Origin: Andalucia godoyi And28
Taxonomy: Eukaryota; Protista; Jakobida
Reading direction: 5' to 3'
Assembly: GCA_009859145.1 (NCBI GenBank)
Contig: VRVR01000012.1
Coordinates: 1 to 64,000 of the forward strand
Length of the DNA stretch: 64,000 nucleotides
The notes under the pieces are model-generated. The model was not told the origin of the DNA, searched no databases, and saw nothing but the letters and a program-made list of their open reading frames with translations. The position numbers and the translations under genes are program-made. Below, in pieces: positions 2,509 through 21,230 of this stretch (the first letter of the stretch is position 1; every line of letters begins with the position of its first letter).

Positions 2509-3381
2509 ATGTCGGACATCGAGACCATTAAGATTGTGTGTGCTGTGAGCATTTTCCTTGTCGGTTTCATTGGAGTTGCGATTCCGCTGGTTCAGAAGGA
2601 GCGAAGAGATCGCCAGCCAATAGCATACTGTAAGTCCCCGCTGATTCTTGACGAACAGAAACCGCATGATGATGCGAAGTGTTCCAGGACGGAACTGCAG
2701 GGGTCCTCTCATGCTGCAGCAGAGTCTTTTGCTGCCGGAGTAGTCCTCAGTGCAGGTACGGTTCATGTCCTCGGCGATGCTTGTGATTCTTTTGACTTGG
2801 TTTCTCCCTCGTTTCAGTATCCGATTGCCATTTTCGTTTGCGCATCAGTCATACTCCTGCTTGTTACGATTCAATATGCGCTGGAAGCATACTTGAAGAA
2901 GAAGAAGAAGAAGGGGACCGACGGAAGCATGCAAGGCGTGTGGGTCTTCTTCGGCGCTTTAGGAGTCCATTCCGTCTTTGAGGGACTGGCCATCGGAGGG
3001 GAAAACGATCTTACAGCAATCAGTACTGTCGTAGCAGCCATTCTGGCCCACAAAGGATTTGCTGCATTTGCTCTGGGAATACGGATGGCAGATGTGTACG
3101 GTCTTGGATCGAAGGGGCAGTTGTGGATTTTAGCCCTTCTCTTTTCCCTTGCCTCTCCTCTGGGTTGCTTTATCGGAATGGCTGTGAGTGCATCACTTAG
3201 AGACTCTCGTTCGGGACTCATTGCGCAGGGATGCCTATTAGCAGCAGCAGCAGGATCGTTTCTATTTATTGCAACTTTTGAAATGATCCCTCACGCATTA
3301 AAATACGGCAGATTGTCGTGGAATCTTGGTCTGTTGTGGTTAGGCTTCGGCATATTCTCGGTTCTTGCATTCTGGGTCTGA
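2509..3381 (+). CDS. ZIP-family (ZRT/IRT-like) zinc/iron transporter
   Basis: Multiple TM segments; motifs FAAGVVLSAGTVHVLGDA, GVHSVFEGLAIG, ILAHKGFAAFALG. Confidence 0.93.
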   Translation: MSDIETIKIVCAVSIFLVGFIGVAIPLVQKERRDRQPIAYCKSPLILDEQKPHDDAKCSRTELQGSSHAAAESFAAGVVLSAGTVHVLGDACDSFDLVSPSFQYPIAIFVCASVILLLVTIQYALEAYLKKKKKKGTDGSMQGVWVFFGALGVHSVFEGLAIGGENDLTAISTVVAAILAHKGFAAFALGIRMADVYGLGSKGQLWILALLFSLASPLGCFIGMAVSASLRDSRSGLIAQGCLLAAAAGSFLFIATFEMIPHALKYGRLSWNLGLLWLGFGIFSVLAFWV

Positions 3382-3933
3382 TCTGTTCATGAAACCCACA
3401 ATGAGCCTCTTTTCACAAATCCACGTGTTGTTCTTCTCGTGTACTGTACGCAGAAAAGCCCGTTGACCATTCATGCGGAGTCGCAGACCATTCTTTACTT
3501 TCTTATGAATAGATAAACCATTGTGGGTCACGTGTCAGTCTGACACGCAGCAGCCCCCGTCGAAGTTGCAAGAGACAATGGACAGGACAGGCATGCTGCC
3601 TGCTTTTTCAAATAAATGTCCTGTTTTATACGGCCCTCTGTATTGCAGAAGTTTTCTTTGCGTTGTCATGACGTACTGACAGAGAGAGAGTCATTCTGTC
3701 GTAAATCGCAAGGTCGGGCGGAGAATTGATTACGAGGCGGGTATTTATGGTGCCCTCATTAGGGTAATTGCGGCGACTTTGCGGACGGACGTATCGTACG
3801 TCAGCCCAGGGTTTCTCGGTTTTCAACAAGTTTTCAGAAAGTAGAAACCCTGACAAACTATGATCAACGTCTTTGCGCCTATTCGACTGCTCCCGCGTTT
3901 CTCTTTTGGTCAGCTGACGCTCGAGAACATTTC

Positions 3934-5298
3934 ATGAAGGACACACGACTGCCCGCCACGATTCTTTCGGGTTTCCTGGGAGCAGGCAAGACTACCTTGC
4001 TGAACCACATCCTGCGGCAGCCGCACGGCCTGAAAATTGCAGTCATCGTGAATGACATGTCCGAGGTGAACGTGGACGCGTCTCTTATTCGGAGCGCTCT
4101 TGTCGACATCGAGCTGCAGCATTCCCTTGCCTCCGTTTCGTTGGCCGACACCCAAGTCAAGGGGACCGTCAAGCTTGCTGAACTGATCCGCACCGAAGAG
4201 AGGATTGTACAGCTGCAGAATGGGTGCATTTGCTGCACACTTCGGGATGACTTGCTGCAAGAGGTCGCGCGGCTCTCGGCGCTGAAGCAGTTTGATTATC
4301 TGCTGATCGAAGGAACAGGGATTGCCGAGCCCATGCAAGTCGCGGAAACATTTTCTTTCGAGGGACTGCGCTCTTTGGCACGAATCGATACCATGGTCAC
4401 GGTTGTCGACAGCGTGCGGTTTCTTGAAGACCTGAAATCTTCCGATCTGTTGAAGGACCGAAAAATGGAATCCGGAGAAGAAGACAAGAGGTGCATCACC
4501 GATTTGCTGGTCGATCAGGTCGAGTTCGCAAACATTCTCCTTTTGAACAAGGCAGACTGTATTCAATCAGAAGATGATCTCGGCCGGGTCAAATCTTTCT
4601 TGGCATCTATGAATCCAGCTGCTAAAATAATGACATGCTCATTCGGCCGCGTTGACGCAGGTGAGCTTCTCAACACGCGTTTGTATTCCGAAGAGGCATC
4701 GCTGTCTATGCCCCGCTGGATGCAGTCCACGAAAATGCCTGTTCTTCCAGAAACAGAAGAGTACGGTGTCTCCTCCTTTGTCTATTCACGAAGAATGCCC
4801 TTCCATCCCTTCCGTCTCGAAGCATTCTTGACTTCCGAAATGGAGTCTCTTAGCCCGGTCCTTCGCTCGAAAGGAGTGTTCTGGAACGCTTCTCGGGACG
4901 ATTTGTGCGGCGAATGGGCACAAAGCGGAAAGATGATCAAACTAGTACCTGCAGGGTTCTGGCTCGCGTGTGCCATAGGAAAAGAGCGCTCGAGGTTTTT
5001 CAAGAGCATGAAAAAGACGTCCGTTGTGGAGAAAGAGGTGCAAAGAATCTGGTCAGAGGAAGACAATCGAGGTGATCGGAGGATTGAGATCGTGTTCATT
5101 GGCATTCATATGGATCGACAGAAAATCGAAAAGGATCTGGACGAGTGTCTGGTGACAAAAGAGGAATGGCTGGCTTGGACCGTGTCGGACCGCGACAAGT
5201 TGTTCGGGGGTGAACTGGACAAGATCCTCAAGGGGTCTCCGTCGTCTCCATCCATTCCTTGTTTCCATTTCTCGAAGGGAAAATGCATCCACAAATAG
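3934..5298 (+). CDS. COG0523/CobW-family G3E GTPase zinc metallochaperone, paralog 1
   Basis: TILSGFLGAGKTT, NDMSEVNVD, GCICC (CxCC), IEGTG, LLNKAD, and CobW_C motifs RSKGVFW and GDRRIEIVFIG. Confidence 0.95.
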   Translation: MKDTRLPATILSGFLGAGKTTLLNHILRQPHGLKIAVIVNDMSEVNVDASLIRSALVDIELQHSLASVSLADTQVKGTVKLAELIRTEERIVQLQNGCICCTLRDDLLQEVARLSALKQFDYLLIEGTGIAEPMQVAETFSFEGLRSLARIDTMVTVVDSVRFLEDLKSSDLLKDRKMESGEEDKRCITDLLVDQVEFANILLLNKADCIQSEDDLGRVKSFLASMNPAAKIMTCSFGRVDAGELLNTRLYSEEASLSMPRWMQSTKMPVLPETEEYGVSSFVYSRRMPFHPFRLEAFLTSEMESLSPVLRSKGVFWNASRDDLCGEWAQSGKMIKLVPAGFWLACAIGKERSRFFKSMKKTSVVEKEVQRIWSEEDNRGDRRIEIVFIGIHMDRQKIEKDLDECLVTKEEWLAWTVSDRDKLFGGELDKILKGSPSSPSIPCFHFSKGKCIHK

Positions 5299-5738
5299 CT
5301 GGAACAACATAATGTACTTGCATTGTTTATGTGAACTGTTTGGAACTGTTTCAGCTGAATCTGAATGTGCATTGAGTGCATGTCAGTGACCATATGAAGT
5401 AAAGGTTTGTGGGTCAGAAGAAATGACGAATCGAAGTCGGAAAGGAGCCGCAGACATTCGGGGCATTCCCTGCATCGGCTGTCGGGTCTTTTTCAATTAC
5501 TGACCGGCTAATTAAGCTTGCTTTTTCTCCGCTTTTTTCTCCGAACCCTACTCGGCATTCGTGTCTCCAGCAGTGCCAGGGAAACCCTACGAAAATCACG
5601 TGCGTCGCCAGTTTCTCCCACTGCTTGAGAAGGACAACCCTGTTCTTTCTTGGCAGTAGTACGCTTCCTGGAGAGTCTCCGGTGCGTTTCCAGCCAAGAA
5701 AAAGAGAATTTTTTCTCTGGGCATCTTCCGATTCGCAA

Positions 5739-7136
5739 ATGCTCCCAGTCACGGTCTTGTCCGGCTTTCTTGGCGCGGGAAAAACAACTCTTTTGAACCA
5801 TATTCTCAACTCTCCTGACCATGGATTCAAGATCGCAGTCATTGTCAATGACATGTCGGAGATTAATGTTGACGGCCAGCTGATTCGATCTTCTTCCAAA
5901 GGATTCTTCAAGCGAACCAAAGAGAAGATCGTCGAAATGCAGAACGGCTGCATTTGCTGCACCTTGCGAGAGGATTTGCTGAAGGAAGTCTCTCGGCTTG
6001 CCAGGAAGCAGGCCTTTGACTATCTCGTTATCGAGGGCACCGGGATTGCTGAGCCCATGCAAGTTGCAGAAACCTTTGCTTTCAAGGAACTCGAAGATGT
6101 GGCAAAGTTGGATACTATGGTGACCGTTGTGGATGCTTACAACTTTCTGGAAGACTACACCTCGGGGGAAAGTCTGAAAGACCGAGAAATGCAGGCAAAA
6201 AAGTCGGATGCAAGGTCTATTGTCGAGCTCCTTGTGGAGCAGGTGGAGTTTGCAAACGTTATCGTCCTGAATAAGATCGACAAGGTTAATGAGCCCGAGC
6301 GACAAGTCCTTCGTGGGTTGCTTTCCAAGCTCAGTCCTGGTGCCAAAATAGTCGAAGCAGTTCATGGAAAACTTGACGTGATGAAAATCCTAAATACTGG
6401 ATTGTTTTCGGTGCAGGAAGCAAGCGAGTTCGACGGATGGATGGAGTCCGTGAATTCCGCTCCTCATGTCCCGGAGACGCTGGAATATGGTATTGGCTCA
6501 TTCGTGTACCGTTCTCGTACCCCCTTCCATCCCAAGCGGCTCGAAAAGCTGCTGAAAGCCCAGCCGACATGCTTCCAAGCTGTTCTCCGTTCTAAAGGCG
6601 TATTTTGGCTGACTTCGACGGATGAGCTGTATGGCGAGTGGGCTTCTTGTGCCTCTTCGCTCAAGCTGCAGCCTGGTGGGCTATGGCTTGCAGCGATGGG
6701 AAAGGCCGAACGTGAGGCGCTTGTTGGTGAAGACGACTCCACGAAGAAGGAATTCGAGCGCATTTGGCAGGAGGACAATGACATTGGGGACCGCAGAAAC
6801 GAAATTGTGTTTATCGGAATCGACATGGATCGCGTTGCCATCGAATCGTGCCTCGACAGTTGTACTGTACCTGCTAGCGAGAGAGAGTGCACTCGTACGG
6901 TGGACCTCAATTCGAAGACGCAGAAGAAGAGGATGAGCAAGGATCCTATTTTTGGAGAAATCAAAGAACTTGTGGACATGTATAAGAACCCAGAACCTGA
7001 ACAACTGCAAGTCAAAGCAAGACACACTCCTTCTGAATTTGAAACTGCGCGTAGACACCGCCGTGCCCATTCCGGAAGGAAACGTCCTATGGACTCGGAT
7101 TTGCGCAAGTCGGTTTCGAAACGGCGTCGTGTGTAG
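5739..7136 (+). CDS. COG0523/CobW-family G3E GTPase zinc metallochaperone, paralog 2
   Basis: First ATG at 5739 (MLPVTVLSGFLGAGKTT); GCICC, IEGTG, LNKID, RSKGVFW, GDRRNEIVFIG; basic C-terminal tail. Confidence 0.95.
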   Translation: MLPVTVLSGFLGAGKTTLLNHILNSPDHGFKIAVIVNDMSEINVDGQLIRSSSKGFFKRTKEKIVEMQNGCICCTLREDLLKEVSRLARKQAFDYLVIEGTGIAEPMQVAETFAFKELEDVAKLDTMVTVVDAYNFLEDYTSGESLKDREMQAKKSDARSIVELLVEQVEFANVIVLNKIDKVNEPERQVLRGLLSKLSPGAKIVEAVHGKLDVMKILNTGLFSVQEASEFDGWMESVNSAPHVPETLEYGIGSFVYRSRTPFHPKRLEKLLKAQPTCFQAVLRSKGVFWLTSTDELYGEWASCASSLKLQPGGLWLAAMGKAEREALVGEDDSTKKEFERIWQEDNDIGDRRNEIVFIGIDMDRVAIESCLDSCTVPASERECTRTVDLNSKTQKKRMSKDPIFGEIKELVDMYKNPEPEQLQVKARHTPSEFETARRHRRAHSGRKRPMDSDLRKSVSKRRRV

Positions 7137-8561: not shown

Positions 8562-10505
8562 CTAGGCAGCGTGTGCAGATGGCTGTGCTCCAAACAAGCC
8601 AGAAGCCCTTCCGTGGAGTTCTTCAACTTGGTCAAGCATTTCTTTCGGCGTGGATGACCCAATTGTGGAAGCGAAGAAGTGCCGCAACTCCTCTGCTTCT
8701 TTTACCCATTCAGAATTGTCGACCTTGACCAATTCTTCTTGATCGTGCAAACTCAAATCCAAGCCAGAAACATTGATTCCACGATGACCAGAGGAAACAA
8801 ACGGAGGCACCAAGCCAATGGAAGTTTCTTTTGCGTCAGCTTTGCCATTGCATCTGTCGAATACCCACTGCAAGACTCGGGCATTATCACCAAATCCAGG
8901 CCACAAGAACGAGTTCGATGTTGCATCTCGGCGGAACCAGTTCACATGGAAGATGCGAGGCTGCTTCTTCGTTTCCATTTTCTTACCTACTGATAGCCAA
9001 TGTCCGAAGTAATGACCCATATTGTAGCCCGCAAACGGCAGCATTGCAAAAGGATCGTGACGAAGCACTCCCAGTGCACCTGCTGCTGCCGCGGTTGTCT
9101 CCGAACGCATGGATGCTCCGAGGAAGACCCCGTGCTGCCAAGAGCGCGCCTCAAAAACCAGCGGAACCGTGCGAGAACGTCTGCCTCCAAACAAGATGGC
9201 ATCAATGGGAACGCCGCTCATGGAAGCAAATGCCTTCTGATCCAACACCGGACACTGCTGTGCTTGAACAGTGAAACGTGCGTTGGGATGCGCAAGAGGA
9301 CCTTTTCCGTCATTTGCGGACCGTTTGACTCCTTTCCAGTCAAAGGAGCCATCAGGTGCAGGCGTTGTCATACCTTCCCACCACACATCGCCGTCGGGGG
9401 TCAGTGCGACGTTCGTGAAAAGCGTGTTCTTTTCAATCGTCTTGATGGCATGTGGGTTTGTCTTTTCGGAAGTTCCCGGGGCTACTCCAAAGAAGCCATA
9501 CTCGGGATTCACTGCCCAGAGACGCCCATCGTGAGGATCCACACGCATCCACGCGATATCGTCTCCTACTGTCTCGAACTTCCAGCCAGGTACCTTGGAA
9601 TTCAACATGGCAAGGTTCGTCTTTCCACATGCTGAGGGAAACGCCGCTGCCACATACTTCTTCTCTCCCTGCGGATTCGTAATTCCAACAATCAACATGT
9701 GCTCTGCAAGCCATCCTTCATCTCGAGCAATCGTGGAAGCGATGCGCAGTGCGAGACACTTCTTCCCTAAGAGAGCGTTTCCACCATACCCGGATCCATA
9801 CGACCAAATCTCCCTTGAATCGGGGAAGTGCGCAATGAATTTGATCCCATCTCGATCGCAAGGCCATGAACTGTCCTTTTCGCCGTCCCGAAGCGGCGCA
9901 CCAACGGAGTGCAGGCACGGAACAAAGGGATTCGACGCATGTATGCCAGAAATGTGATTCAGTGCATCCGCGCCCATTCGGGTCATGATCTTCATGGATG
10001 CCGCCACATACGCAGAATCCGTCAACTGAATACCCTGAATGGAAAATGGAGAGCCCACAGGTCCCATCGAGAAGGGAACAATGTACATTGTTCGGTTTCG
10101 CATGGAAGATGCAAACAGATTCTTGAGTTTGGGCCGCAGCTCATCCGGATGGCGCCAATAGTTTGTCGGGCCTGCTTCACGAGGAGTACGAGACGCAATA
10201 AACGTGCGGTCCTCCACACGTGCAACATCCAATGGATCCGATCGCGCAAGATACGAACCAGGTCTCTTGAGCTTGGTCAACGTTCCTTGGGCAACCATCA
10301 TCTCGCACAGTGTCTCAAACTCGGACTGAGTTCCCTCGCAAAGAAACAACTTATTTGCGCCCGTGTTCTCAGCGTGTTCGCGAACAAATGACACCAGTTT
10401 TTCATTGGAAGTCCGTTTCATAAGTCCATCGAGAGTAATCTCGGCAAATGATCTCGTGTGTACGAGGCCAAAAGCGCGGGAAACCCAATTTCTCCTCGAC
10501 AACAT
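8562..10505 (-). CDS. PCK: GTP-dependent phosphoenolpyruvate carboxykinase with probable mitochondrial presequence
   Basis: YGSGYGGNALLGKKC, WLAEHML, AAFPSACGKTNLAM, VGDDIAW, NPEYGFFGVAPGT, FHVNWFRR. ATG at 10505 gives MLSRRNWVSRAF. Confidence 0.97.
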   Translation of the reverse strand: MLSRRNWVSRAFGLVHTRSFAEITLDGLMKRTSNEKLVSFVREHAENTGANKLFLCEGTQSEFETLCEMMVAQGTLTKLKRPGSYLARSDPLDVARVEDRTFIASRTPREAGPTNYWRHPDELRPKLKNLFASSMRNRTMYIVPFSMGPVGSPFSIQGIQLTDSAYVAASMKIMTRMGADALNHISGIHASNPFVPCLHSVGAPLRDGEKDSSWPCDRDGIKFIAHFPDSREIWSYGSGYGGNALLGKKCLALRIASTIARDEGWLAEHMLIVGITNPQGEKKYVAAAFPSACGKTNLAMLNSKVPGWKFETVGDDIAWMRVDPHDGRLWAVNPEYGFFGVAPGTSEKTNPHAIKTIEKNTLFTNVALTPDGDVWWEGMTTPAPDGSFDWKGVKRSANDGKGPLAHPNARFTVQAQQCPVLDQKAFASMSGVPIDAILFGGRRSRTVPLVFEARSWQHGVFLGASMRSETTAAAAGALGVLRHDPFAMLPFAGYNMGHYFGHWLSVGKKMETKKQPRIFHVNWFRRDATSNSFLWPGFGDNARVLQWVFDRCNGKADAKETSIGLVPPFVSSGHRGINVSGLDLSLHDQEELVKVDNSEWVKEAEELRHFFASTIGSSTPKEMLDQVEELHGRASGLFGAQPSAHAA

Positions 10506-10908
10506 TGTTCCAACAGCCAATGAAATGCTAAAATCTCTCAACTGGTCAAGAAAAGTAGATTATTAAAATTAAATACACATATAATTAAATGAAGAAAGGG
10601 AGGGGAAAAAGTTTAAGAAAAGAAAGGGAAAAAAATAGAGGTGGGAGATTGACTCGGAAAGAAAAACGTGACACAGTTCCAATGCTGTTTTGATCGTTTC
10701 AACTTCCCTGGGTTTTTTCATCACTCTTTTTTTTTAACTCGTGGCGCGAAACGGACAATGATTGAGCAGGTTTGTATTTTTTAGACAAAATTGGGGTGCA
10801 CTCGTAAACGTGCATTTTTTCGTGGCGGTTGTTTCACTTTTTTTTTACAGCCGGCAAAGAACCACCCAAACATCAACAACCTATTAAAAAAAAGAAGGAA
10901 AATACACA

Positions 10909-11886
10909 TCACAATACTGCAGTCGCTGGAACATTGTCACGGGATTCTTCTGGAGCTTGCTGCAGCTTCAAGATCGAAACAGAACGTAATCTCATCTTGA
11001 ACCCCATAATTCGATCATCCAGATGGACGGCAGAAAACGAGTTTGTGGTCGGGAGCTTGCGAAACGCAATGATGCCCGAGTACGTGCTGAGCTCAAACGC
11101 AGAAACGTCCATATCTGCTCCGAGGAAGGACTGAAACTCCATTACATAATCCGCATAAGTCGACAGCATGGACGCGACAGCATCCATGGCATCCAGATGT
11201 ACCCAAACGACGCAATTCCGCAGTCTCGCATATGCGCGCAGCTTGCGTGACATTTGCATGACTTCCCGCTCCGACAAACCTGGTTCAAAAGAGTCGATGA
11301 GTACAACTTGAGTGGCGTCCGCGGGAATGTTATCAACGACCAGCTCCCGATCAACAGACACGAATGAAGAGTGGATTTCGTCTGCTGAGATGTGCTTGGA
11401 CGTATCTACAGGCCCGCCTGTTTCGGAAGATGCTGCCATCCCAAGATTGAGCGATTTTGGCGTGTACTTTGCATACTGCCAGGCGATTTTCAAATCCAAA
11501 CTCGACGAAGCCGGTGATGTACCAGAGTCAACGACTGGTTTATCAACGCTTGTGAAGGTCCTTGGATGGCTGCTTCCCGATCGTGCGTACACGCGTCCGC
11601 AGAGATCTGCATATGGATCGGTGCAACATGATATAAAATGCAGCCTTCTTTTTTCAAGAACGGCTTCTGTGAGGAACAAATTGGTAAATACTTGCGAATA
11701 TCTGGAGAATGCATCTCCCACAAGAAGCACCACCGAGCCAAGAGCAACTCCTCCGCCAAACAACTTGTCCAGATCTAACGAGCCGGTAGACAGCAGGTAC
11801 TGTGCCGTGTGTGCAGACGATCGGACTCCCGGAACAGCCTGTTGAGTGGAAGCATTCGCCCCTTTCTTTACAAACGTCGACTTCAT
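10909..11886 (-). CDS. ELP4: Elongator complex subunit 4
   Basis: STGSLDLDKLFGGGVALGSVVLL and DLKIAWQY motifs of a RecA-fold without an active P-loop. Start placed at MKSTFVKK; an upstream ATG is possible. Confidence 0.85.
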   Translation of the reverse strand: MKSTFVKKGANASTQQAVPGVRSSAHTAQYLLSTGSLDLDKLFGGGVALGSVVLLVGDAFSRYSQVFTNLFLTEAVLEKRRLHFISCCTDPYADLCGRVYARSGSSHPRTFTSVDKPVVDSGTSPASSSLDLKIAWQYAKYTPKSLNLGMAASSETGGPVDTSKHISADEIHSSFVSVDRELVVDNIPADATQVVLIDSFEPGLSEREVMQMSRKLRAYARLRNCVVWVHLDAMDAVASMLSTYADYVMEFQSFLGADMDVSAFELSTYSGIIAFRKLPTTNSFSAVHLDDRIMGFKMRLRSVSILKLQQAPEESRDNVPATAVL

Positions 11887-12090
11887 TCCTGCACCGTTGA
11901 AAGTTGATTCCCGAGCCACGAATTCTCTCATTCGACGCAATGTTTTCTGGAAGTTTTCCATGCCTTTTTGCCCGCTGCTGCTTGGTTCAGAACCGAGGAT
12001 CCGGGAAGGAAATCTGCTCGACGGCTGTCGACCGCGAAAACAGACTGGACTTTCCACGAACTGCCAAAAGCAACAGCGTGCAAGAGAGAA

Positions 12091-12116
12091 GTGTGTGTGT
12101 GTGTGTGTGTGTGTGT
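12091..12116. repeat. (GT)n microsatellite in the divergent ELP4/SF1 intergenic region
   Basis: Direct reading. Confidence 0.95.
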
Positions 12117-12181
12117 TTTTGTATGCATATAGTGTAATGCGAGAGCCTCCGTTGATCATTTTGCTTGAAAAGAAGAAATAG

Positions 12182-13048
12182 ATGACGAGGTGGCGAGATT
12201 CATCAGACATATTGCCGTCTGGAGTACTGCTTACGCTTCCGTTTGGAATTCCACAGGACGCTCTCGATGCATACTGTTTGCGTGTTCGCATTGAAGAAGC
12301 CAGCAGACAGTTGACAACTGGTCGAATTGACGATTTTGTGTTTACCCGCAGCCCTTCTCCACCTCCCCAGTACGATGCCCGTGGACGTCGGGTGAACACT
12401 CGAGATGTCGTGGTCAAGGCCGCATTGTCCAATGAACGAGCCCGGCTTGTCGATCTTGCCTCACGAATGTCTCCATTGTACCGACCGCCGGCGGATTTTC
12501 GCGGCGAGCAACGCAGGCTGTCGAGGAAAATCTACATTCCTGTTCAAAAATATCCGAATTACAACTTTGTAGGAATCATCATTGGACCGAGAGGCCACAC
12601 CCAAAAGGAACTCGAGCGGGAGTCGAATTGCCGCATCGCTATTCGCGGTCGCGGGGCGTACAAGGAGGGGAAGATCAGGAAGAACGAGAGAGCAGAAGAA
12701 GAAAACGACGATTTACATGTTTTAATCACCGGAGAGAATCAAGATAGCTTGGACAAGGCTGAATCCATGATTGCAAAGTTGCTCATTCCGCTCGAAGAAA
12801 ATGACAACGTGCACAAGCGGAAGCAGCTGAAGGAACTGGCAGCATTGAATGGCACGCTGCGAGACGAGGAAACGGAGGTTTTTGAACCAGTTCCCAAGCG
12901 TAACAGAATTAAGAAAACTCCATGGGGAACAACGGTGGACTTGGACTCTCCCGGTGCGTCGGTTGTCATCGAGTCGGAAGAAATGCGAAGAGAAGCACTG
13001 CAAGAGGAAGAGGACTTTGAAGCTCTCCATTCACTGCTTCACACATGA
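12182..13048 (+). CDS. SF1: Splicing factor 1 / branchpoint-binding protein (KH-QUA2)
   Basis: RSPSPPPQYD..G.RVNTR, FVGIIIGPRGHTQK, IAIRGRG..KEGK, KRKQLKELAALNGTLRD. Confidence 0.93.
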   Translation: MTRWRDSSDILPSGVLLTLPFGIPQDALDAYCLRVRIEEASRQLTTGRIDDFVFTRSPSPPPQYDARGRRVNTRDVVVKAALSNERARLVDLASRMSPLYRPPADFRGEQRRLSRKIYIPVQKYPNYNFVGIIIGPRGHTQKELERESNCRIAIRGRGAYKEGKIRKNERAEEENDDLHVLITGENQDSLDKAESMIAKLLIPLEENDNVHKRKQLKELAALNGTLRDEETEVFEPVPKRNRIKKTPWGTTVDLDSPGASVVIESEEMRREALQEEEDFEALHSLLHT

Positions 13049-13138: not shown

Positions 13139-13819
13139 TCAAGTACGGGGATCGAGAAGACGTTGGGACAGCACATGCAAGAACAGCGGAATTGATGCCG
13201 ACGATTCGAGGACATGCAGGATGTGGGGATCGATCGATTGCACAAACGGTGATTCCAGCATATTCACACGTCCGTCTGCAATTTGAAATAAAAGAATATC
13301 TGCTTCCGTTCTCGCAACGCATGACTGCAAGCGATAGACTCCGTCTTCCGCAAGATCTACCTTCCACCCGAACAACGAAAACACGGCATCTCGAAATTCC
13401 CGTGCCTTCTGTCGAAACATTTCTTTGATACGCACGTTCATCTTCTTAACATCTTCCAGCTCCTTTATAAGCTTGTCATGTGCCTCTTGGGTGAACTCGA
13501 CCGTCGAAAACTTTTGCTTGATTTTGGTCAGTTCGTCCTGAAGAACCTTGTTGGAAGATCTCAATCGATCCACTTCACTGGCTGACAATTCCGCTCTCGA
13601 TTTTGTCTCGGGATTTACACTGAAATGCAGAACTTTGGTTTTAGAAGGGTCATAGTCCTTCCCAGTTGCTTTCATTTCCAGTTGTTTCACCTGGAACCCG
13701 AGCATCTCGACCTCCTTCTCCAGCTGTGGATATCGCTGCACAATCTCCACGACTTGCTGCAGAGACTTATTCGGGAAGCTCTTCCTCCATACATCGGATG
13801 AAGATATATCATCATCCAT
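13139..13819 (-). CDS. MAD1: Mad1 spindle-checkpoint protein, C-terminal module only (226 aa)
   Basis: TKVLHFSVNP (Mad2-interaction motif), RIKEMF (RLK-like), EFRDAVFSLFGWKVD and YRLQS (RWD-like CTD). Confidence 0.85.
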   Translation of the reverse strand: MDDDISSSDVWRKSFPNKSLQQVVEIVQRYPQLEKEVEMLGFQVKQLEMKATGKDYDPSKTKVLHFSVNPETKSRAELSASEVDRLRSSNKVLQDELTKIKQKFSTVEFTQEAHDKLIKELEDVKKMNVRIKEMFRQKAREFRDAVFSLFGWKVDLAEDGVYRLQSCVARTEADILLFQIADGRVNMLESPFVQSIDPHILHVLESSASIPLFLHVLSQRLLDPRT

Positions 13820-14195: not shown

Positions 14196-17100
14196 TTACG
14201 ATCGATAGTCAGAATTGATGACCACATAGTCCTGCGTCAAATCTCCGCCGTGCACACGGGCGGATCCTTCACCATTGTTGAGAGCAATCGAAATGACGAT
14301 GGCATTATCATGAACTGGGTACTGGGGCTTGTGCGTATCCTTCTTGTAGATCTGGCACTTTTGCAAGTAGTTGCTGACCTTCTTTTCAATTTCCGTTGTC
14401 CACGACACGGAGTTGCCGTTATCAACAATCGTATCGTCTCCAATGCGGACGGTAACACTGCTCCAGTCTGCTTCCTCGACACCTCGACCCATTGCAGCAA
14501 GGATACGTCCGACATTGGGATCGTTGCCCGCCATTGCAGACTTCACCAACGGAGAGTTGACAACATTCTTGCCAATCTTGACAGCCAACTCACGCGACGG
14601 AGCACCGGTCACCAAGACCTCCAGGACATGTTGCACCCCTTCTCCATTCCACACAACCTGTCTTGCAAGGTGTTCGCACACTTTTTGCAACGCATCTTTG
14701 AAGGCATCACGAGGGACCGCCGGTTTCCTGCCCGATGCAATCAGGATCACTGCATCCGAGGTGGATGTGTCTGCGTCGATACTGATGCAGTTGAAGGTTT
14801 CGTCGCACACCTGGCGCAGCATGGAACTCAGGTCCTCTCGGGAAAACGGCGCGTCTGTCATGATGCATCCAAGCATTGTCCCCATGTTTGGCTCAATCAT
14901 TCCGGCGCCTTTCGCTACACCAACGACAGTGGCGCCACCAGGCAATTGCTCAGCCCATGCCTTGGGATACGTGTCTGTTGTCATCATGGCACGAGCCAGC
15001 TCCATCACTGTTGACGAGCCGCGCGTGATGTTGGGAACATGCAAAATCATGTCGTCCGCTGGCAGCCTCCAGCCAATAATCCCCGTCGACAGGGGGATGA
15101 TTTCTGACGGCAGGCAGTTTCCAAGCTCTTTGGCAAAAGCCGTACAGATCGCCTCCGCATCCCTGCCGCCCTCTTCTACACCGACATTGGAAATCTTGTT
15201 GTTGATCCACAGTGCACGAATCTTGGAGCCTTGCCGAAGGCGATCCCGTCCGATTTTCACAGGATGGCCACAGTTGGGATTGCGGGTGTACACAGCAGCC
15301 CATTCGCAAGCATCGTCCATGCGCACGCAAGAAAATTGCAGTACTTTCTTCCTACCATTGCCGAGCTCTCTTGGAAAGAACGGCACATTGGTGGTTGCCA
15401 TGTGAAACCCTGCAGGGAACGAGATGGAGTTCAAAAACTGATTATAGGCTTCGCAAGAAGACGAAGAGTACGGCATCAGCGTACGCGGAACTTCGTCCTG
15501 AAGAACTTGAAGCCGAGACAGGTTCTCGACAGAGCTCACAGGAGTCAACTGCCCGTCTTTTGTCGGAAAAGGATTGAGACCTACCAGCCGACGCACATTC
15601 GCATACGCAGAGTATGCTCCACCGGCCAGCAGGTTATCAATTGTTGACTGCACAAACAGGACCTTCCCGTCATCGGAAATGGAAAGGCCGCTGATGACAA
15701 CAACCGGTGTGTTGGCGACATCAGACGTCGTCACCGTTCGGTTCCAGAATAGCCGCACGGAAGGATGTCCAGAATATTGCGTTTCATATGCTTTCTTAAC
15801 CGAATCCACGTCCCACTTGCCGTTGGCCAGTCTTGCCTGAATGCAGCACACAATTCCTCGATCAAACTGGTCGGTGACCACCGGTACAAAGTTGACAGTC
15901 ACACCAAGCTTGGTCGACATTTCCCATTGCTGTGCGTGATGAAGCGGCTGGTAAGGTATGACAGTGTCATGCAGCTCTGGAAACTTCTTCTGATAGTCCT
16001 TTCCGGCACCAGACCAGCTTGAAATCCCACAAACATGCAAGTCAAAACCTTTCTTTTCCTTCAGCAAAACGCTGGCAGCACAAATCACGGCTGTTGAATA
16101 GCATCCAGGGTTGCTGATCCGATGATTCACAAGCGGTCTCTGATCAAGATAGGGGAACGCATACTCCCAGTTCTTCTGGTGGCGATGGTCAAAGCTGACG
16201 TCGACAATGCGAACGGAATCCGGAATCTCCGGCATAGCAGTCTTCAGAACGTTATTCGGGGAAGCAGAAACGAACACATCAACGGCATAGCCGGAAACAT
16301 CTTTCCAGGACTGGAGAACGTGGATGTCATTCGTGGCGTCATCGGAACTCGCTGCCGATCCAGGGGCTCGGAAACGAACGACGTCAAATTCCGCATCCGC
16401 TTGGAAAAGACCAAGGACTTCAGTTCCAATGAGGCCCCGGGAGCCAATGAGGCCCACAGTGTACTTTGCTTTCGCTTGTATCCATATTCCCGATACGTTT
16501 GTGTCGTGAAAAGACATTGGAAGACTTGAATGGGTGCCGAGAAAGTACCGAGTAGCCAGTGGAAGATGCCGCGACATGTTCCTGATCTGGTCAAGTTTCA
16601 ACTTGCAGCCCTCCGTCAAATCCTCGAATGGAAACGAATCCCACATGTCCAACGGAAGGGACCCCAGCTTGCGATCGCCGAGGAATTCTGTTAACGCCGA
16701 GGTATCACGTGTGTGGGCAACACCATACCCAACACCGACTGCTTTTACTCCAATGGCCAATGCAGAAATGGCCAGATCGGCGTTCGAATTCCACACATGC
16801 GAAGTTCCAGACAGAACGCACAGGAAATGAATGACAGGAATGCTCCCGGATTTCCAGGCAGCAACACAACCATCAGTGTGACAGGCAGAAGGTACCGCGA
16901 CGCAGCCATGAGCTTCGCCAAGAGCTTCTCCAGAAAACTGTGGCTCCTGTAAACCGACAAAGCGGGTGGCAGACTTGGATGCCGCAACAGAATTGCATTT
17001 CTCTACAATGCGGGACTGCTGAGAAATTGCAACCTCGCGAATGACTGGAAGCATCTCGGGAGTGGTAACCCTCTGCCCCAACGAGTAGTGGATAGGAAGA

Positions 17101-18569
17101 TTGTGTTTCTTCAGCTCTTCGTTAATTTGAGATCCGGCGCCGTGAACGATGGCCACCGAAAACCCAAGTTTCTGCCAAGCAACAGCTCTTTCTGCAAGAA
17201 CATGAAGATCAGCGTCCGACACATCGCCGCTGATCTTCCAGACAATCGGCTTGAATTCAGGTGCTGGTGCTGAAGGACAGACGGCTGCGACTGCAGGAAG
17301 CTCCAAAACATCTCGAAGAGCTCTCAAGAATTGCCACATTTCCGCTTCTGATATCACCAACGGCGGGCAAACACGCAACGTGTTCATTCCAGCGGAGATT
17401 GCCAGAACTCCGCGCTCGCGAAGCTTGACGAGAACGGAGGCTACTGGGAGTGACTCGTCGAGCTGCACCCCGATCAAGAGTCCCATTCCGCGCACGTCCA
17501 CGACTTTGGGGCACTCCTTTTGCAAGTTCCGTAGCTGATCATACAGCCACATGCCTTTGGCTTGCACGTCTGTCATCAAGGTACCTGTTGACATTTGATC
17601 GACAACCCATGACGCTGCGGAGGCAGCGAGTGCATTACCGCCAAACGTCGATCCATGCTGACCCGGTTTAATTTCGAATTTGCCCGTGCACAGGACTGCG
17701 CCGACCGGGAATCCGTTGCCCAGAGCCTTAGCAAGGGTCACAAAATCAGGCTGCCATCCAAGCTGCTGATGGCAAAGGAACGATCCCGTGCGACCGACAC
17801 CTGTCTGCACCTCGTCCACAATCCACACGAATTGCTTCTTGGCGTGGCACGCCTTCAGGAGCGCAGAAAATGGCGCGGAAACAGGGACAACACCGCCCTC
17901 GCCCTGAATGGGCTCCGTAATGACGATGCCAACATTGTTGTCTTCAAGGAACTTCTCGAATCCCTCGCAACAATTCCAGTCCCAAAACACCACGTGCGGA
18001 TTGAGGTAGTCGGCATACGCGTCGCGATACGCAGGAGTGTACGTGCAAGCCAAAGGCCCAACGGAACGACCATGGAAGCCGCCCTTCATGGCCAAGATTT
18101 TCTTGACACTCTTAACAATCACGCGGCCGCCGACATCGTCATTGTTGATGACCGCGCAGTTGCTATCCGAACCGTTGTTGCGACTGATTTCGGCACAGTC
18201 GACAGCATGCAATGACTGCAAATGCAAAATCGCAAACTTGAGCGCCGCCTCATTTGCCTCTGTTCCACTGTTGCAGAGAAACACGCGGGCACCTTCAACA
18301 GAAGGCGCCGCAAGTTCACGAAGCTTAGCAATCAACTCAAGCTCGCGATCAGAATAATAGTAGTTGCTAACGTGCGTGCACAAGGCAGCCTGCTCGGCAA
18401 CAGCTGATGACCATCCGGGATGCGAATGTCCCAGGTTCACGACACAGATGCCAGCGTACACATCGAGGTACTTACGACCATCCGTGTCGTAAACAAAGCA
18501 TCCATGCGCTTCACGAAGAACAGTGTCTTTGGGTTTGTTGTAGTTCGGAAGGCACGCTGAAATGAGCAT
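14196..18569 (-). CDS. argD-argB-argC-argJ: Four-domain ornithine biosynthesis fusion: acetylornithine aminotransferase, acetylglutamate kinase, acetylglutamyl-phosphate reductase, ornithine acetyltransferase (~1457 aa)
   Basis: One stop-free frame. ArgD: GRKYLD, SGTEANE, FHGRS, EPIQGEGG, DEVQTG, LAKALGNG. ArgB: WKISG, VHGAG, NADLA. ArgC: GLIGSRGLIG, NPGCY. ArgJ: KGAGMIEPNMGTML, DTSTSD, DYVVINSDYRS. An upstream exon is possible. Confidence 0.95.
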   Translation of the reverse strand: MLISACLPNYNKPKDTVLREAHGCFVYDTDGRKYLDVYAGICVVNLGHSHPGWSSAVAEQAALCTHVSNYYYSDRELELIAKLRELAAPSVEGARVFLCNSGTEANEAALKFAILHLQSLHAVDCAEISRNNGSDSNCAVINNDDVGGRVIVKSVKKILAMKGGFHGRSVGPLACTYTPAYRDAYADYLNPHVVFWDWNCCEGFEKFLEDNNVGIVITEPIQGEGGVVPVSAPFSALLKACHAKKQFVWIVDEVQTGVGRTGSFLCHQQLGWQPDFVTLAKALGNGFPVGAVLCTGKFEIKPGQHGSTFGGNALAASAASWVVDQMSTGTLMTDVQAKGMWLYDQLRNLQKECPKVVDVRGMGLLIGVQLDESLPVASVLVKLRERGVLAISAGMNTLRVCPPLVISEAEMWQFLRALRDVLELPAVAAVCPSAPAPEFKPIVWKISGDVSDADLHVLAERAVAWQKLGFSVAIVHGAGSQINEELKKHNLPIHYSLGQRVTTPEMLPVIREVAISQQSRIVEKCNSVAASKSATRFVGLQEPQFSGEALGEAHGCVAVPSACHTDGCVAAWKSGSIPVIHFLCVLSGTSHVWNSNADLAISALAIGVKAVGVGYGVAHTRDTSALTEFLGDRKLGSLPLDMWDSFPFEDLTEGCKLKLDQIRNMSRHLPLATRYFLGTHSSLPMSFHDTNVSGIWIQAKAKYTVGLIGSRGLIGTEVLGLFQADAEFDVVRFRAPGSAASSDDATNDIHVLQSWKDVSGYAVDVFVSASPNNVLKTAMPEIPDSVRIVDVSFDHRHQKNWEYAFPYLDQRPLVNHRISNPGCYSTAVICAASVLLKEKKGFDLHVCGISSWSGAGKDYQKKFPELHDTVIPYQPLHHAQQWEMSTKLGVTVNFVPVVTDQFDRGIVCCIQARLANGKWDVDSVKKAYETQYSGHPSVRLFWNRTVTTSDVANTPVVVISGLSISDDGKVLFVQSTIDNLLAGGAYSAYANVRRLVGLNPFPTKDGQLTPVSSVENLSRLQVLQDEVPRTLMPYSSSSCEAYNQFLNSISFPAGFHMATTNVPFFPRELGNGRKKVLQFSCVRMDDACEWAAVYTRNPNCGHPVKIGRDRLRQGSKIRALWINNKISNVGVEEGGRDAEAICTAFAKELGNCLPSEIIPLSTGIIGWRLPADDMILHVPNITRGSSTVMELARAMMTTDTYPKAWAEQLPGGATVVGVAKGAGMIEPNMGTMLGCIMTDAPFSREDLSSMLRQVCDETFNCISIDADTSTSDAVILIASGRKPAVPRDAFKDALQKVCEHLARQVVWNGEGVQHVLEVLVTGAPSRELAVKIGKNVVNSPLVKSAMAGNDPNVGRILAAMGRGVEEADWSSVTVRIGDDTIVDNGNSVSWTTEIEKKVSNYLQKCQIYKKDTHKPQYPVHDNAIVISIALNNGEGSARVHGGDLTQDYVVINSDYRS

Positions 18570-18993
18570 GCCACAGTCAACGGTAGTAAGGATAGGTGGG
18601 AGAGACCTTCTCGGGAAACGGTTATGGGGGGAAAAAACACAATCAGAGAAAGAAGACAAGACCAACGGGAGGAAGATCGAGACTATGTTAGAAGGAAGGG
18701 AAAAGGAAAGAGAAGGGAAGAGAAGGGAAGAGAGGGAGAGAGGGAGAGAGGGAGAAAGAGGAGGAGAAAGAATGAAAGAAAAAGAAGACCACTCTGAAAG
18801 AGAAAAGAATTGCTGTCCGAGAAAAAAATGTGCTTGGCGAGTGCGAAATCGAGCCAATTGGGGTAAAACTCCCACAGTGATTTGGCGCTTGGAGATGTCG
18901 TGCCGGGATTCGCGCCTGAATTCATCCGCATTGTTTCCCGCGCAACCGGATCTTGCAAAGATTACGCCAGATGACTTGAGAGGTGCAGGTACG

Positions 18994-19572: not shown

Positions 19573-21230
19573 TTACTTCTTTTCCTTCTCTTCAGATACT
19601 TGGCCGGGTAGCTGGCCGACTTTGACCTTCAGCATAAGATTATCCGGCGTGAGGAATGCATTCGTGATCTTTGCTCCCAACTTTTCAGCCTTCTGCACCT
19701 CTGCCATGGCTCCATAAACCTCGGGAGATCGGGCGCCTGCAAAATCCTTGATGATTTGGAACATGAGTTTCTGCTCAGTCACGTTCGCCTCTGCGCGTGC
19801 AAGTGCTTCGCGAACGAGATTCTGCTGACGAATCTCGACGAGCTTGCGCGTTTCGCTTTCCACTCTGATCTCGCGCTGCACACGCTCCAGAGCAAGCTCG
19901 GATTCTGCCTTCTCTTTCAACATTGCGTTTGTGCGATCCGTGGTTTCCTTGACGTAGTTGTCCAATACTCCTTGTATATCAGGATTCGAACATTTGATGG
20001 AAGTCAGCTGCAACGCAGTGATGTCAATTCCCTTCTCTTTGAAGAATGCTGAAGATTCCCCAACCACTTCAGACAGGATCTGCGGAGCCACATTGAAAAC
20101 CCGGCGGTGTTCCTCTACAGCAACTTTCTTGGATATTTGATTCTTAATCCAGTCCGCCATCGTTGTCAAGAACACATCGCCAATCAGGCAGAATTTAGGA
20201 ATATCGACAATGTCATAGGCAGCAGAGAACGACAGTTCAATAAGGACATTATCCTGGGAGCGAAATACGGACGACATGGCATACCGGCTGTTGCGAATGT
20301 TGAGAATGCTCACAATTCCAGCCGGAGACTGGAACTCCAGCAGCTTGTCAAACGGACCCAAGAAAAAGGACCGGGCCGAAGAATCGTCATATCTCTTGAC
20401 AAACCGCTCGCCTGTAACCGTGTTGAGCACGACGCACAGTTCATTCGTTTCCAGTGTCGTGATCGGAACGACCTTGACGACAATTCATCCAGATTCGGCA
20501 CAAACCGCTGCGGCTCCGAGAGCATACGGATGTCGCCGGTGGTAACGTTTCGGACATGCAAAGACTGGACCTTGTTGACTTCATATGCCTGCAGAATGCA
20601 GATCGTCGGACTGGAGGACGGCAAGCCGTTCAAACCAAGCGATATGAAATCCTCTTGAGGCAAAGGAATGAACGAACATGGCCCGACAATTTTTCGGTAC
20701 GTTTGCGATTCGCGATTGAACATCCAGCAGTACTGGTTGGCTTGCACCAGCGGAGAGGGCCTCACATCCATGTCGACGATCTGGTACGGTTTCGGGACAA
20801 ACAGAACGGGCCCGACAATGTGTTCAATGCTGCCATCTTGGTTCTGAATTCGAATGTAGTGATGCAGCGGAACGGAAACTTTCGATCGAACCGGAGAAAT
20901 GCGGTCATACGGGGACTTGAGCTGCACCTTTGCTGGCCCAGGGATGATTGTGATGTCATTCGACGCCCAGTCACGGACTTCGACAAACTGCGACGAGTCC
21001 AACACAATTTTTTTGAAGACCTTCACCTTGAAGACTGGAGGGCAGCAAGGGATGCAGAACCATGTCGGCCCGTCTTTCAGCGTCCTTCCTGTGAAATTCT
21101 CGATAATGGCCTGTGAATCCTCATTCGAGTTGTAGCACGAAAGACACAGTGGTATGCAGCAGCACATGGAAGCGTCTGTTCCAGTCTCAAATACATCTCG
21201 AAACGAAGACGACTGTGCAACCCTTGACAT
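19573..21230 (-). CDS. Major-vault-protein-like repeats plus SPFH/band-7 shoulder and coiled coil; one frameshift near 20484
   Basis: Two overlapping ORFs join as ...FVPNLDE / IVVKVVPITTLETNELCVVLNTVTGE if one A is added at GAT GAA TT. Repeated 'H/K.vGP..FvP' units; SPFH-like FRSQDNVLIELSF and KEKGIDITALQLTSIKC. Confidence 0.7.

Follow-up and report, generated by a model that had tools for sequence, protein, structure and literature searches.

A single-frame ArgD-ArgB-ArgC-ArgJ fusion gene in the jakobid Andalucia godoyi and its relatives on giant-virus contigs

We analyze a stretch of 64,000 nucleotides from the protist Andalucia godoyi And28 (positions 1 to 64,000 of contig VRVR01000012.1, assembly GCA_009859145.1; hereafter "the window"), in which the minus strand between 14196 and 18569 encodes a predicted protein that joins domains resembling ArgD, ArgB, ArgC and ArgJ in one reading frame. 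On the strength of domain assignments, conserved catalytic residues and genomic context, we consider it probable that this is a genuine nuclear A. godoyi gene for a 158-kDa protein carrying all four enzymes of the cyclic glutamate-to-ornithine route. The fusion defines a small family that is common to giant viruses and another eukaryote. Its component enzymes, and the principle of fusing the steps of a pathway, are well known from Arg5,6, AROM, CAD and P5CS.

The minus strand from 14196 to 18875 is a single open reading frame (ORF) without a stop for 1559 codons. Within it, the four-domain coding sequence (14196..18569) begins at the first ATG, at 18569, and extends over 1457 codons to a stop at 14196-14198, with a predicted product of 158 kDa; in DNA of 50% GC, the chance of a run this long without a stop is about (61/64)^1457, or roughly e^-70. 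The homologues begin at the position equivalent to this ATG in an alignment of 10 full-length proteins, and neither the ORF listing nor a reading of the sequence reveals an in-frame ATG between the GTG at 18875 and 18569. The 5' flank contains a CT-rich (polypyrimidine) tract at 18660..18800 on the same strand, about 130 nt of almost exclusively C and T that is in frame with the ORF and has no ATG. This tract is probably 5' untranslated region or promoter rather than coding sequence.

Pfam places Aminotran_3, AA_kinase, Semialdhyde_dh with Semialdhyde_dhC_1, and ArgJ in that order and in one frame, and NCBIfam names the four enzymes likewise (argD, argB, argC, ArgJ). An earlier note on this DNA had proposed these four domains in this order within one stop-free frame. 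The ORF listing and Pfam confirm the proposal, and its domain coordinates lie close to those computed here (17304-18524, 16524-17249, 15570-16460 and 14199-15437). The motifs it quoted are all present: LAKALG at residues 279-284, NPGCY at 820-824 and NMG|TML at 1228-1233. Its statement that the catalytic residues are retained holds for the pyridoxal-phosphate (PLP) lysine, the ArgC cysteine and the ArgJ threonine, all of them invariant, and does not extend to the second histidine of the ArgC H-R-H motif, which is replaced by glutamine.

The first domain (17304..18524, minus strand; residues 16-422) resembles acetylornithine aminotransferases among the class-III PLP aminotransferases. PF00202 matches residues 16-422 with an E-value of 1e-92 and 311.4 bits against a cut-off of 30.5, covering profile positions 11-403 of 403. 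The PLP lysine K281 (codon 17727-17729), in TLAKALGNG, and D252 and Q255, in DEVQTG, are invariant in 10 of 10 sequences, as are the SGTEANE, FHGR and TLR motifs across the full-length proteins. The domain scores below the curated NCBIfam cut-offs (356.8 bits against 410.05 for TIGR00707; 354.6 against 457 for NF002874), which marks it as a divergent member whose substrate specificity is not assured. It also contains an in-frame insertion of about 35 amino acids (residues ~117-152; 18114-18221, minus strand) that is specific to Andalucia and that no viral homologue has. Inspection gave no clear splice signals around the insertion, which may form a loop at the surface or represent an unspliced in-frame intron.

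The last domain (14199..15437, minus strand; residues 1045-1457) resembles ornithine acetyltransferase/N-acetylglutamate synthase. PF01960 matches residues 1076-1457 (E 5e-105, 351.8 bits against a cut-off of 32), and the equivalog model NF003802 falls just short of its threshold, at 348.8 bits against 351. The nucleophile T1231 (codon 14877-14879), within PNM(G/A)|T, is invariant across the family, as are the STGIIGW, MTTD, AKGAGMIEPNM, NGEG and GNDPNVGR motifs. Judged by these motifs, ArgJ most likely cuts itself between G1230 and T1231, which would give an alpha chain of residues 1-1230 (predicted 133.6 kDa) and a beta chain of residues 1231-1457 (nt 14199-14879, minus strand; predicted 24.6 kDa), or chains of about 134 and 25 kDa. 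The cleavage site, and a small beta chain beside a very large alpha chain, agree with what had been claimed from the sequence earlier. The accompanying suggestion that the beta chain is released is unlikely, because the alpha and beta chains of known ArgJ enzymes remain associated.

Between these two lies first the ArgB domain (16524..17249, minus strand; residues 441-682), with an amino-acid-kinase fold like that of N-acetylglutamate kinase. PF00696 matches residues 441-610 (E 2e-10, 41.3 bits against 24.9), covering only profile positions 2-166 of 234; NF003387 matches with an E-value of 2.8e-22 and TIGR00761 with 3e-20, the latter at 72.7 bits against a cut-off of 151.3. Against structures in the PDB, the domain aligns across the whole kinase with N-acetylglutamate synthase/kinase (NAGS/K) enzymes (E 3.6e-13), and the closest solved structures are the NAGS/K enzymes 3s6g and 3s6k and the N-acetylglutamate kinase of yeast Arg5,6 (3zzf, 3zzi). 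The recognizable motifs are WKISGD (K445), HGAG (476-479), GQRVT (R500), NSNAD (D598) and EGCKLK (K658). Family-wide, the canonical KxGG, HGGG, GxRVT, NxNAD and GGMxxK read KISG, HGAG, GQR(V/K)T, N(S/A)NAD and EGxKxK, and K445, R500, D598 and K658 are invariant in all 10 full-length proteins. We modeled residues 431-1040 with AlphaFold2 (mean predicted local distance difference test score, pLDDT, 78.8; predicted template modeling score, pTM, 0.68), and the N-lobe of the kinase is predicted mostly at pLDDT 82-94. A DUF619/NAT domain is absent after ArgB, and no obvious N-terminal helix of the arginine-inhibition kind is seen on it; a kinase of this form may lack feedback control.

The ArgC domain (15570..16460, minus strand; residues 704-1000) resembles N-acetyl-gamma-glutamyl-phosphate reductase (AGPR) and carries the Rossmann motif GLIGSRGLIG. 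Both of its Pfam profiles pass, PF01118 (Semialdhyde_dh) on residues 704-810 with an E-value of 6e-7 and PF22698 (Semialdhyde_dhC_1) on residues 823-979 with 3.5e-23, and TIGR01850 matches with 1e-36 at 126.9 bits, below its cut-off of 233.6. In a Foldseek search with the AlphaFold2 model, the top 23 matches were AGPR or LysY structures, with template modeling (TM) scores, normalized to the target, of 0.71-0.78; on solved AGPR structures the model superposes at 0.74-0.78. The catalytic C823 (codon 16101-16103, in NPGCY) and R796 (16182-16184, in DxRH) are invariant across the family and correspond in role to Cys158 and Arg114 of the Mycobacterium tuberculosis enzyme (PMC12041015).

A word-indexed search of 5.8 billion proteins returned the identical 1457-aa sequence (P0001), which means that public collections may already contain the protein, and nine other four-domain proteins (P0002-P0010), all metagenomic, with lengths of 1358-1683 aa and an identity of 43-51% to the query. 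When residues 431-1457 were compared exhaustively by HMMER with 1.84 billion cluster representatives, the search added three-domain ArgB-ArgC-ArgJ proteins that start with methionine right at the kinase domain (P0363, P0364, P0366, P0511) and fragments of the family (P0365, P0367, P0368); the remaining matches were ArgJ alone or two-domain ArgD-ArgJ proteins. The 10 full-length proteins align end to end with a mean column identity of 55% and with invariant blocks in each domain. By domain, Andalucia is 47% identical to the others in ArgD, 31% in ArgB, 44% in ArgC and 58% in ArgJ. As every domain is conserved and the catalytic motifs are invariant across the 10 proteins, the alignment argues for selection acting on all four activities. 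Eight further loci initially taken for full-length fusion matches (L058-L061, L069, L071, L080, L082) were rejected: they are bacterial argC-J-B-D clusters, with another gene order and in different frames.

We found no description of a four-domain ArgD-B-C-J protein in open-access papers or preprints, a search that did not extend to domain-architecture databases, where the arrangement may be listed without comment. The open-access literature likewise yielded no description of glutamate-to-ornithine genes in giant viruses. The A. godoyi genome paper (PMC7050145) does not mention ornithine, ArgJ or arginine biosynthesis. The earlier remark that no four-way fusion is known therefore stands insofar as no publication describing one was found; the protein is not unique, given the nine other four-domain proteins.

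If the four domains work as their parent enzymes do, the protein would run a closed cycle. ArgJ would transfer the acetyl group from N-acetylornithine to glutamate, yielding ornithine and N-acetylglutamate; ArgB would phosphorylate N-acetylglutamate with ATP; ArgC would reduce the labile acyl-phosphate with NADPH through a Cys823 thioester; and ArgD would turn the semialdehyde back into N-acetylornithine by transamination with glutamate. In sum, 2 Glu + ATP + NADPH would give ornithine + 2-oxoglutarate. The two chains, of 25 kDa (beta) and 134 kDa (alpha), would remain attached to each other, and the protein is expected to be at least a dimer, since all four parent enzymes are obligate oligomers. 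Its N-terminus lies only 6 residues ahead of the conserved ArgD core, and the lack of an extension before that core suggests a location probably outside organelles, unlike the fungal and plant pathways. The presence of ArgJ favors the acetyl route over the LysW-carrier route, which uses a related kinase, reductase and aminotransferase. Channeling of the two unstable intermediates is plausible, and a fusion that joins a full catalytic cycle containing them offers a natural test case for substrate channeling. More generally, multi-enzyme fusions reveal which reactions gain from proximity, and this one would give metabolic engineers a part encoded by one gene for producing ornithine, arginine or polyamines.

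The linkers bear on whether the four domains remain joined. ArgD and ArgB are separated by a Pro/Ala-rich linker (17250..17303, minus strand; residues 423-440); in the alignment, the viral homologues have a far longer, N/K-rich stretch at this place. The ArgC-ArgJ linker (15438..15569, minus strand; residues 1001-1044) contains an Andalucia-specific insertion and is predicted to be disordered, with pLDDT below 50 for residues 574-610 of the AlphaFold2 model. Linkers across the family vary freely in length, with Asn/Lys-rich inserts in the metagenomic copies, and are poorly conserved. Such features are also what one might see in a polyprotein-like precursor, made as one chain and then cut at the linkers into separate enzymes, with neither a stable four-activity particle nor channeling. 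The methionine starts of P0363, P0364, P0366 and P0511 at the ArgB boundary, which indicate that ArgD is separable, fit such a precursor too, and yeast Arg5,6 is a precedent, being processed into kinase and reductase. We nonetheless hold this account to be unlikely: neither a protease site nor a targeting signal can be recognized in the protein, ArgB and ArgC are joined by only about 21 residues, and the fusion has been kept in lineages whose sequences are more than 50% different, which suggests that the linkage itself is useful.

The reading of the gene as a complete four-enzyme protein has a number of observations to answer. None of the four domains reaches its NCBIfam equivalog or subfamily cut-off, although ArgJ misses by about 2 bits. 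ArgB is the least conserved domain, with 29-33% identity between Andalucia and the viral copies; two of its phosphate-loop glycines are replaced, GGMxxK has become EGxKxK, and the LTDxxG nucleotide motif is not recognizable. In ArgC, alignment to 3dr3 and 1vkn shows the canonical H-R-H replaced by H878-A-Q880 (15930-15938). In M. tuberculosis ArgC, the second histidine, His219, is proposed to activate Cys158, and His217 aids phosphate binding (PMC12041015). These points, all of which weigh against the reading, could be taken to mean that the protein is only partly active, with ArgD and ArgJ at work and ArgB, ArgC or both serving as inactive scaffolds or acting on changed substrates, so that it would not carry out the full conversion alone. 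Such an account draws on the loss of the cysteine-activating histidine in ArgC, on scores far under the cut-offs for both middle domains (72.7 against 151 bits for ArgB; 126.9 against 233.6 for ArgC), on the altered C-lobe motifs of ArgB, and on the existence of natural ArgD-ArgJ proteins (Batrachochytrium KAH9256016.1) that pair D and J without B and C.

We judge partial activity improbable all the same. None of Q880, H878, C823, R796, K445, R500, D598 and K658 varies among the 10 sequences or has decayed; viral B-C-J proteins without ArgD persist, which is hard to explain if B and C are dead weight; and ArgC is predicted to fold like active AGPRs. Across the family, the ArgC motif reads H878-(A/S/Y)-Q880. 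Because the glutamine replacement is invariant rather than variable, the active site of ArgC appears to have been remodeled, perhaps with H878 activating Cys823, and the invariant His-to-Gln change points to an alternative activation of the catalytic cysteine.

The genomic setting supports the gene as native. The nuclear genome of the jakobid A. godoyi is deposited under accession VRVR00000000 (Gray et al. 2020, PMC7050145), and within it contig VRVR01000012.1 spans 406,542 bp, with the ORF unbroken over 4.4 kb between MAD1/SF1 and other eukaryotic genes. The neighbors in the window are eukaryotic on both strands and include PEPCK, ELP4, SF1, the C-terminus of MAD1, VIT1, ALG9, a protein kinase, MatE, a family-X DNA polymerase, an Arf-like GTPase, TBCC, Brr6, an ING/PHD protein, MAK16 and syntaxin 6. 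Long intron-free ORFs and the CT-rich upstream tract might point to a kinetoplastid, but the genes here switch strand every few kb, which argues against one. The fusion gene has the same GC content at third codon positions (0.57) and likewise the same codon preferences as its neighbors, and its relative synonymous codon usage correlates with that of the other window genes at 0.84, the highest value among 19 ORFs tested. Apart from one generic kinase match, none of the window neighbors has a giant-virus match; no other arg gene was found in the 64-kb window, and Rfam and tRNA scans of it returned nothing. The fusion gene is a settled part of the nuclear genome, neither contamination nor a recent insertion.

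An exact look-up in the contig collection returned no called gene for the 1457-aa product. The public gene model could therefore differ, and this too counts against the gene as we describe it. The missing record is also what favors an artefact (an assembly chimera, viral or bacterial contamination, or a sequencing error merging neighboring genes), an explanation we regard as very improbable given a continuous 4.4-kb ORF amid the eukaryotic genes of a 406-kb contig, native codon usage, a window without giant-virus-like neighbors, and assemblies of at least nine further samples, together with a second eukaryote-like contig, that independently show the same domain order. A chimeric assembly, which the earlier note had named as something that would undo its proposal, is thus not borne out by codon usage or by the independent homologues of the same architecture.

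The metagenomic members of the family are strongly AT-biased and lie on compact, ORFan-rich contigs. The contig of P0003 (L002) also encodes an isoleucyl-tRNA synthetase and a bacterial-type topoisomerase IB, the latter with 60-71% identity to genes of IMG/VR contigs that carry the name GVMAG, the label of giant-virus metagenome-assembled genomes. In one such contig, GVMAG-M-3300023174-128 (L087), the four genes around the fusion (the synthetase, two ORFans and the bacterial-type topoisomerase IB) recur arranged as in L002, and the fusion itself and the small ORF beside it are missing. The contig of P0008 (L001) shares collinear stretches of up to 12 genes with 19 giant-virus loci in IMG/VR, found via its thymidylate synthase neighbor; the genes in common include asparagine synthase, thymidylate synthase, a JmjC-like protein and an RNB nuclease. 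In 4 of the 19 loci, the genes that flank the L001 fusion lie 15-56 nt apart, at the point where L001 holds a gene of 4.1 kb. When the RNB neighbor of L001 was searched alone in IMG/VR, nothing was found. On a third contig (L085), two neighbors have giant-virus matches. Together, these comparisons indicate that at least two different giant-virus lineages carry the fusion as an accessory insertion at different places, and their gene content suggests that the carriers are relatives of mimivirus.

Other searches on the viral side were less informative. The mimivirus-type early promoter motif AAAATTGA occurs 6 times in L002 against 4.85 expected, which is not significant; 4-5 of the copies stand upstream of genes in the right orientation, which lends weak support only. 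No relative of the fusion was found in IMG/VR with a one-protein query or a family-alignment query, and none lies within the 1.44 Mb of giant-virus loci that we fetched. A Foldseek search of the ArgB-ArgC model against the BFVD viral structures gave generic Rossmann-fold matches only, and no viral protein there combines the ArgB and ArgC folds.

The contig of the fragment P0365 (L100) is of a different kind. It has a GC content of 0.49 and also encodes the eukaryote-specific proteasome adaptor ECM29, and its ArgC-ArgJ sequence, in one frame, is 61% identical to that of Andalucia and runs off the contig start. Most simply, L100 would come from a second eukaryote related to Andalucia.

As a separate observation, the 27-kb contig of P0363 (sample 3300059473) places its ArgB-ArgC-ArgJ gene about 4 kb from a gene for argininosuccinate synthase; its other products include a PMT-type mannosyltransferase, DeoC, a Na/H exchanger and dCMP deaminase. 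On this virus-like contig, the synthase is possibly another gene of the arginine pathway.

Neighbor-joining trees were built for the ArgC-ArgJ region and for the ArgJ region, with bacterial ArgC-ArgJ or ArgJ sequences at the root. Every bootstrap (100%) recovers the family as monophyletic and pairs Andalucia with L100. The AT-rich sequences form a clade in only 52% of bootstraps for the ArgC-ArgJ region and 14% for the ArgJ region. The trees therefore favor neither virus-to-eukaryote nor eukaryote-to-virus transfer, and they place the eukaryotic pair neither firmly inside nor firmly beside the viral sequences. The three-domain P0363 nests beside the four-domain P0002 and P0003, and this position among four-domain proteins makes its lack of ArgD secondary. 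The nearest stand-alone ArgJ proteins include those of Vitrella, Aureoumbra and spirochaetes. Assembly of the fusion in a eukaryote is compatible with, and not proven by, the affinities of the kinase and of ArgJ.

With the same gene in environmental giant viruses, the fusion seems to behave as a transferable "pathway in one gene." A bolder version, which we offer tentatively and think possible but doubtful, is that of a mobile pathway cassette, a complete cycle in one gene moving between giant viruses and protists; the Andalucia ornithine pathway would then be derived from a virus rather than by descent, and the viruses would make ornithine, leading to polyamines or arginine, in the infected cell. 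We know of no earlier virus-encoded complete multi-step route of amino-acid biosynthesis, and this would be the first if the cassette reading is true. A gene common to a deep-branching free-living protist and environmental giant viruses is in any event a concrete case for virus-host gene flow, and if the viral copies are active, giant viruses can carry a multi-step amino-acid pathway and not only single auxiliary enzymes.

Several other features of the window deserve mention. On the plus strand, a gene for a ZIP zinc transporter (2509-3381) is followed by two tandem genes for CobW/COG0523-type GTPases (3934-5298 and 5625-7136), and 2509-7136 is possibly a zinc-homeostasis gene cluster in a eukaryote. 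The GTP-dependent PEPCK (8562-10541, minus strand) has no close eukaryotic relative in the database searched; its best matches, 55-60% identical, are mostly bacterial (Thermoleophilia, Chlamydiales) or metagenomic, with one MMETSP transcript, and the enzyme may be bacterial-type or laterally acquired. Two overlapping minus-strand ORFs in different frames (19573-20430 and 20310-21230), with native codon usage and no Pfam or PDB match, probably belong to a single orphan gene that an intron or frameshift divides. The TTG-started ELP4 (PAXNEB) ORF (10909-12432, minus strand) overlaps the start of the SF1 ORF (12182-13048, plus strand) by about 250 nt, and the true ELP4 start probably lies further downstream. 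Finally, MAD1 probably has introns or further exons, since its ORF (13139-13819) matches no more than the C-terminal third of the Pfam MAD profile.

Among the closest known systems is fungal Arg5,6, which likewise places kinase before reductase in one frame (here ArgB at 441-682 and ArgC at 704-1000); in sequence, ArgB of the fusion comes nearest to the kinase domains of NAGS/K enzymes and of yeast Arg5,6. Arg5,6, however, has two activities rather than four, and a DUF619/NAT domain lies between its kinase and reductase where the fusion has a junction of about 21 aa. Arg5,6 carries a mitochondrial presequence and is cleaved into two enzymes, whereas the fusion has no N-terminal extension and no upstream in-frame ATG.

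The two-domain ArgD-ArgJ proteins (Batrachochytrium KAH9256016.1, which is P0389, together with P0011, P0379, P0405 and P0410) have an N-terminal aminotransferase and a C-terminal ArgJ, as here. They are 850-938 aa long, at least one comes from a chytrid fungus, and P0011 scores best for the whole protein outside the family. They lack ArgB and ArgC, and their N-termini are basic and presequence-like, unlike that of the fusion. In the ArgJ tree, monophyly of the family with the ArgD-ArgJ proteins was recovered in 0 of 200 bootstraps; the latter form their own ArgJ clade, and with the clades separate the two kinds of fusion look independent.

Bacterial argC-argJ-argB-argD clusters hold the same four enzymes as a genetic unit, and some fuse ArgC and ArgJ in the same order as here, in one-frame proteins of 761-802 aa on metagenome contigs (L058 137-2395; L071 92-2368; L063 10001-12274; L065 1809-3716). 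Their order, however, is C-J-B-D and not D-B-C-J, B and D lie in separate frames, and identity is 27-31%.

For the viral copies, the natural comparison is with the polyamine genes of giant viruses; a survey of these (PMC9992855) records ornithine decarboxylase (ODC), arginase and spermidine/homospermidine synthases among Imitervirales and Algavirales, with no mention of ArgJ, acetylglutamate or acetylornithine. The viral homologues of the fusion are likewise accessory genes, and they would make ornithine, the substrate of virus-encoded ODC. A one-gene supply of ornithine would in this way feed ODC and the polyamine enzymes that such viruses encode.

Consecutive pathway steps also share one chain in AROM (Aro1, pentafunctional), CAD and P5CS (ProB-ProA), the last with an acyl-phosphate and a semialdehyde as intermediates. 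The fusion history of P5CS is covered in PMC11061531. These proteins belong to other pathways and folds, and their sequence kinship with the fusion exists only at the level of the kinase and reductase superfamilies. To our knowledge, none of the three closes a cycle, as the fusion would, with its last domain regenerating the substrate of the first.

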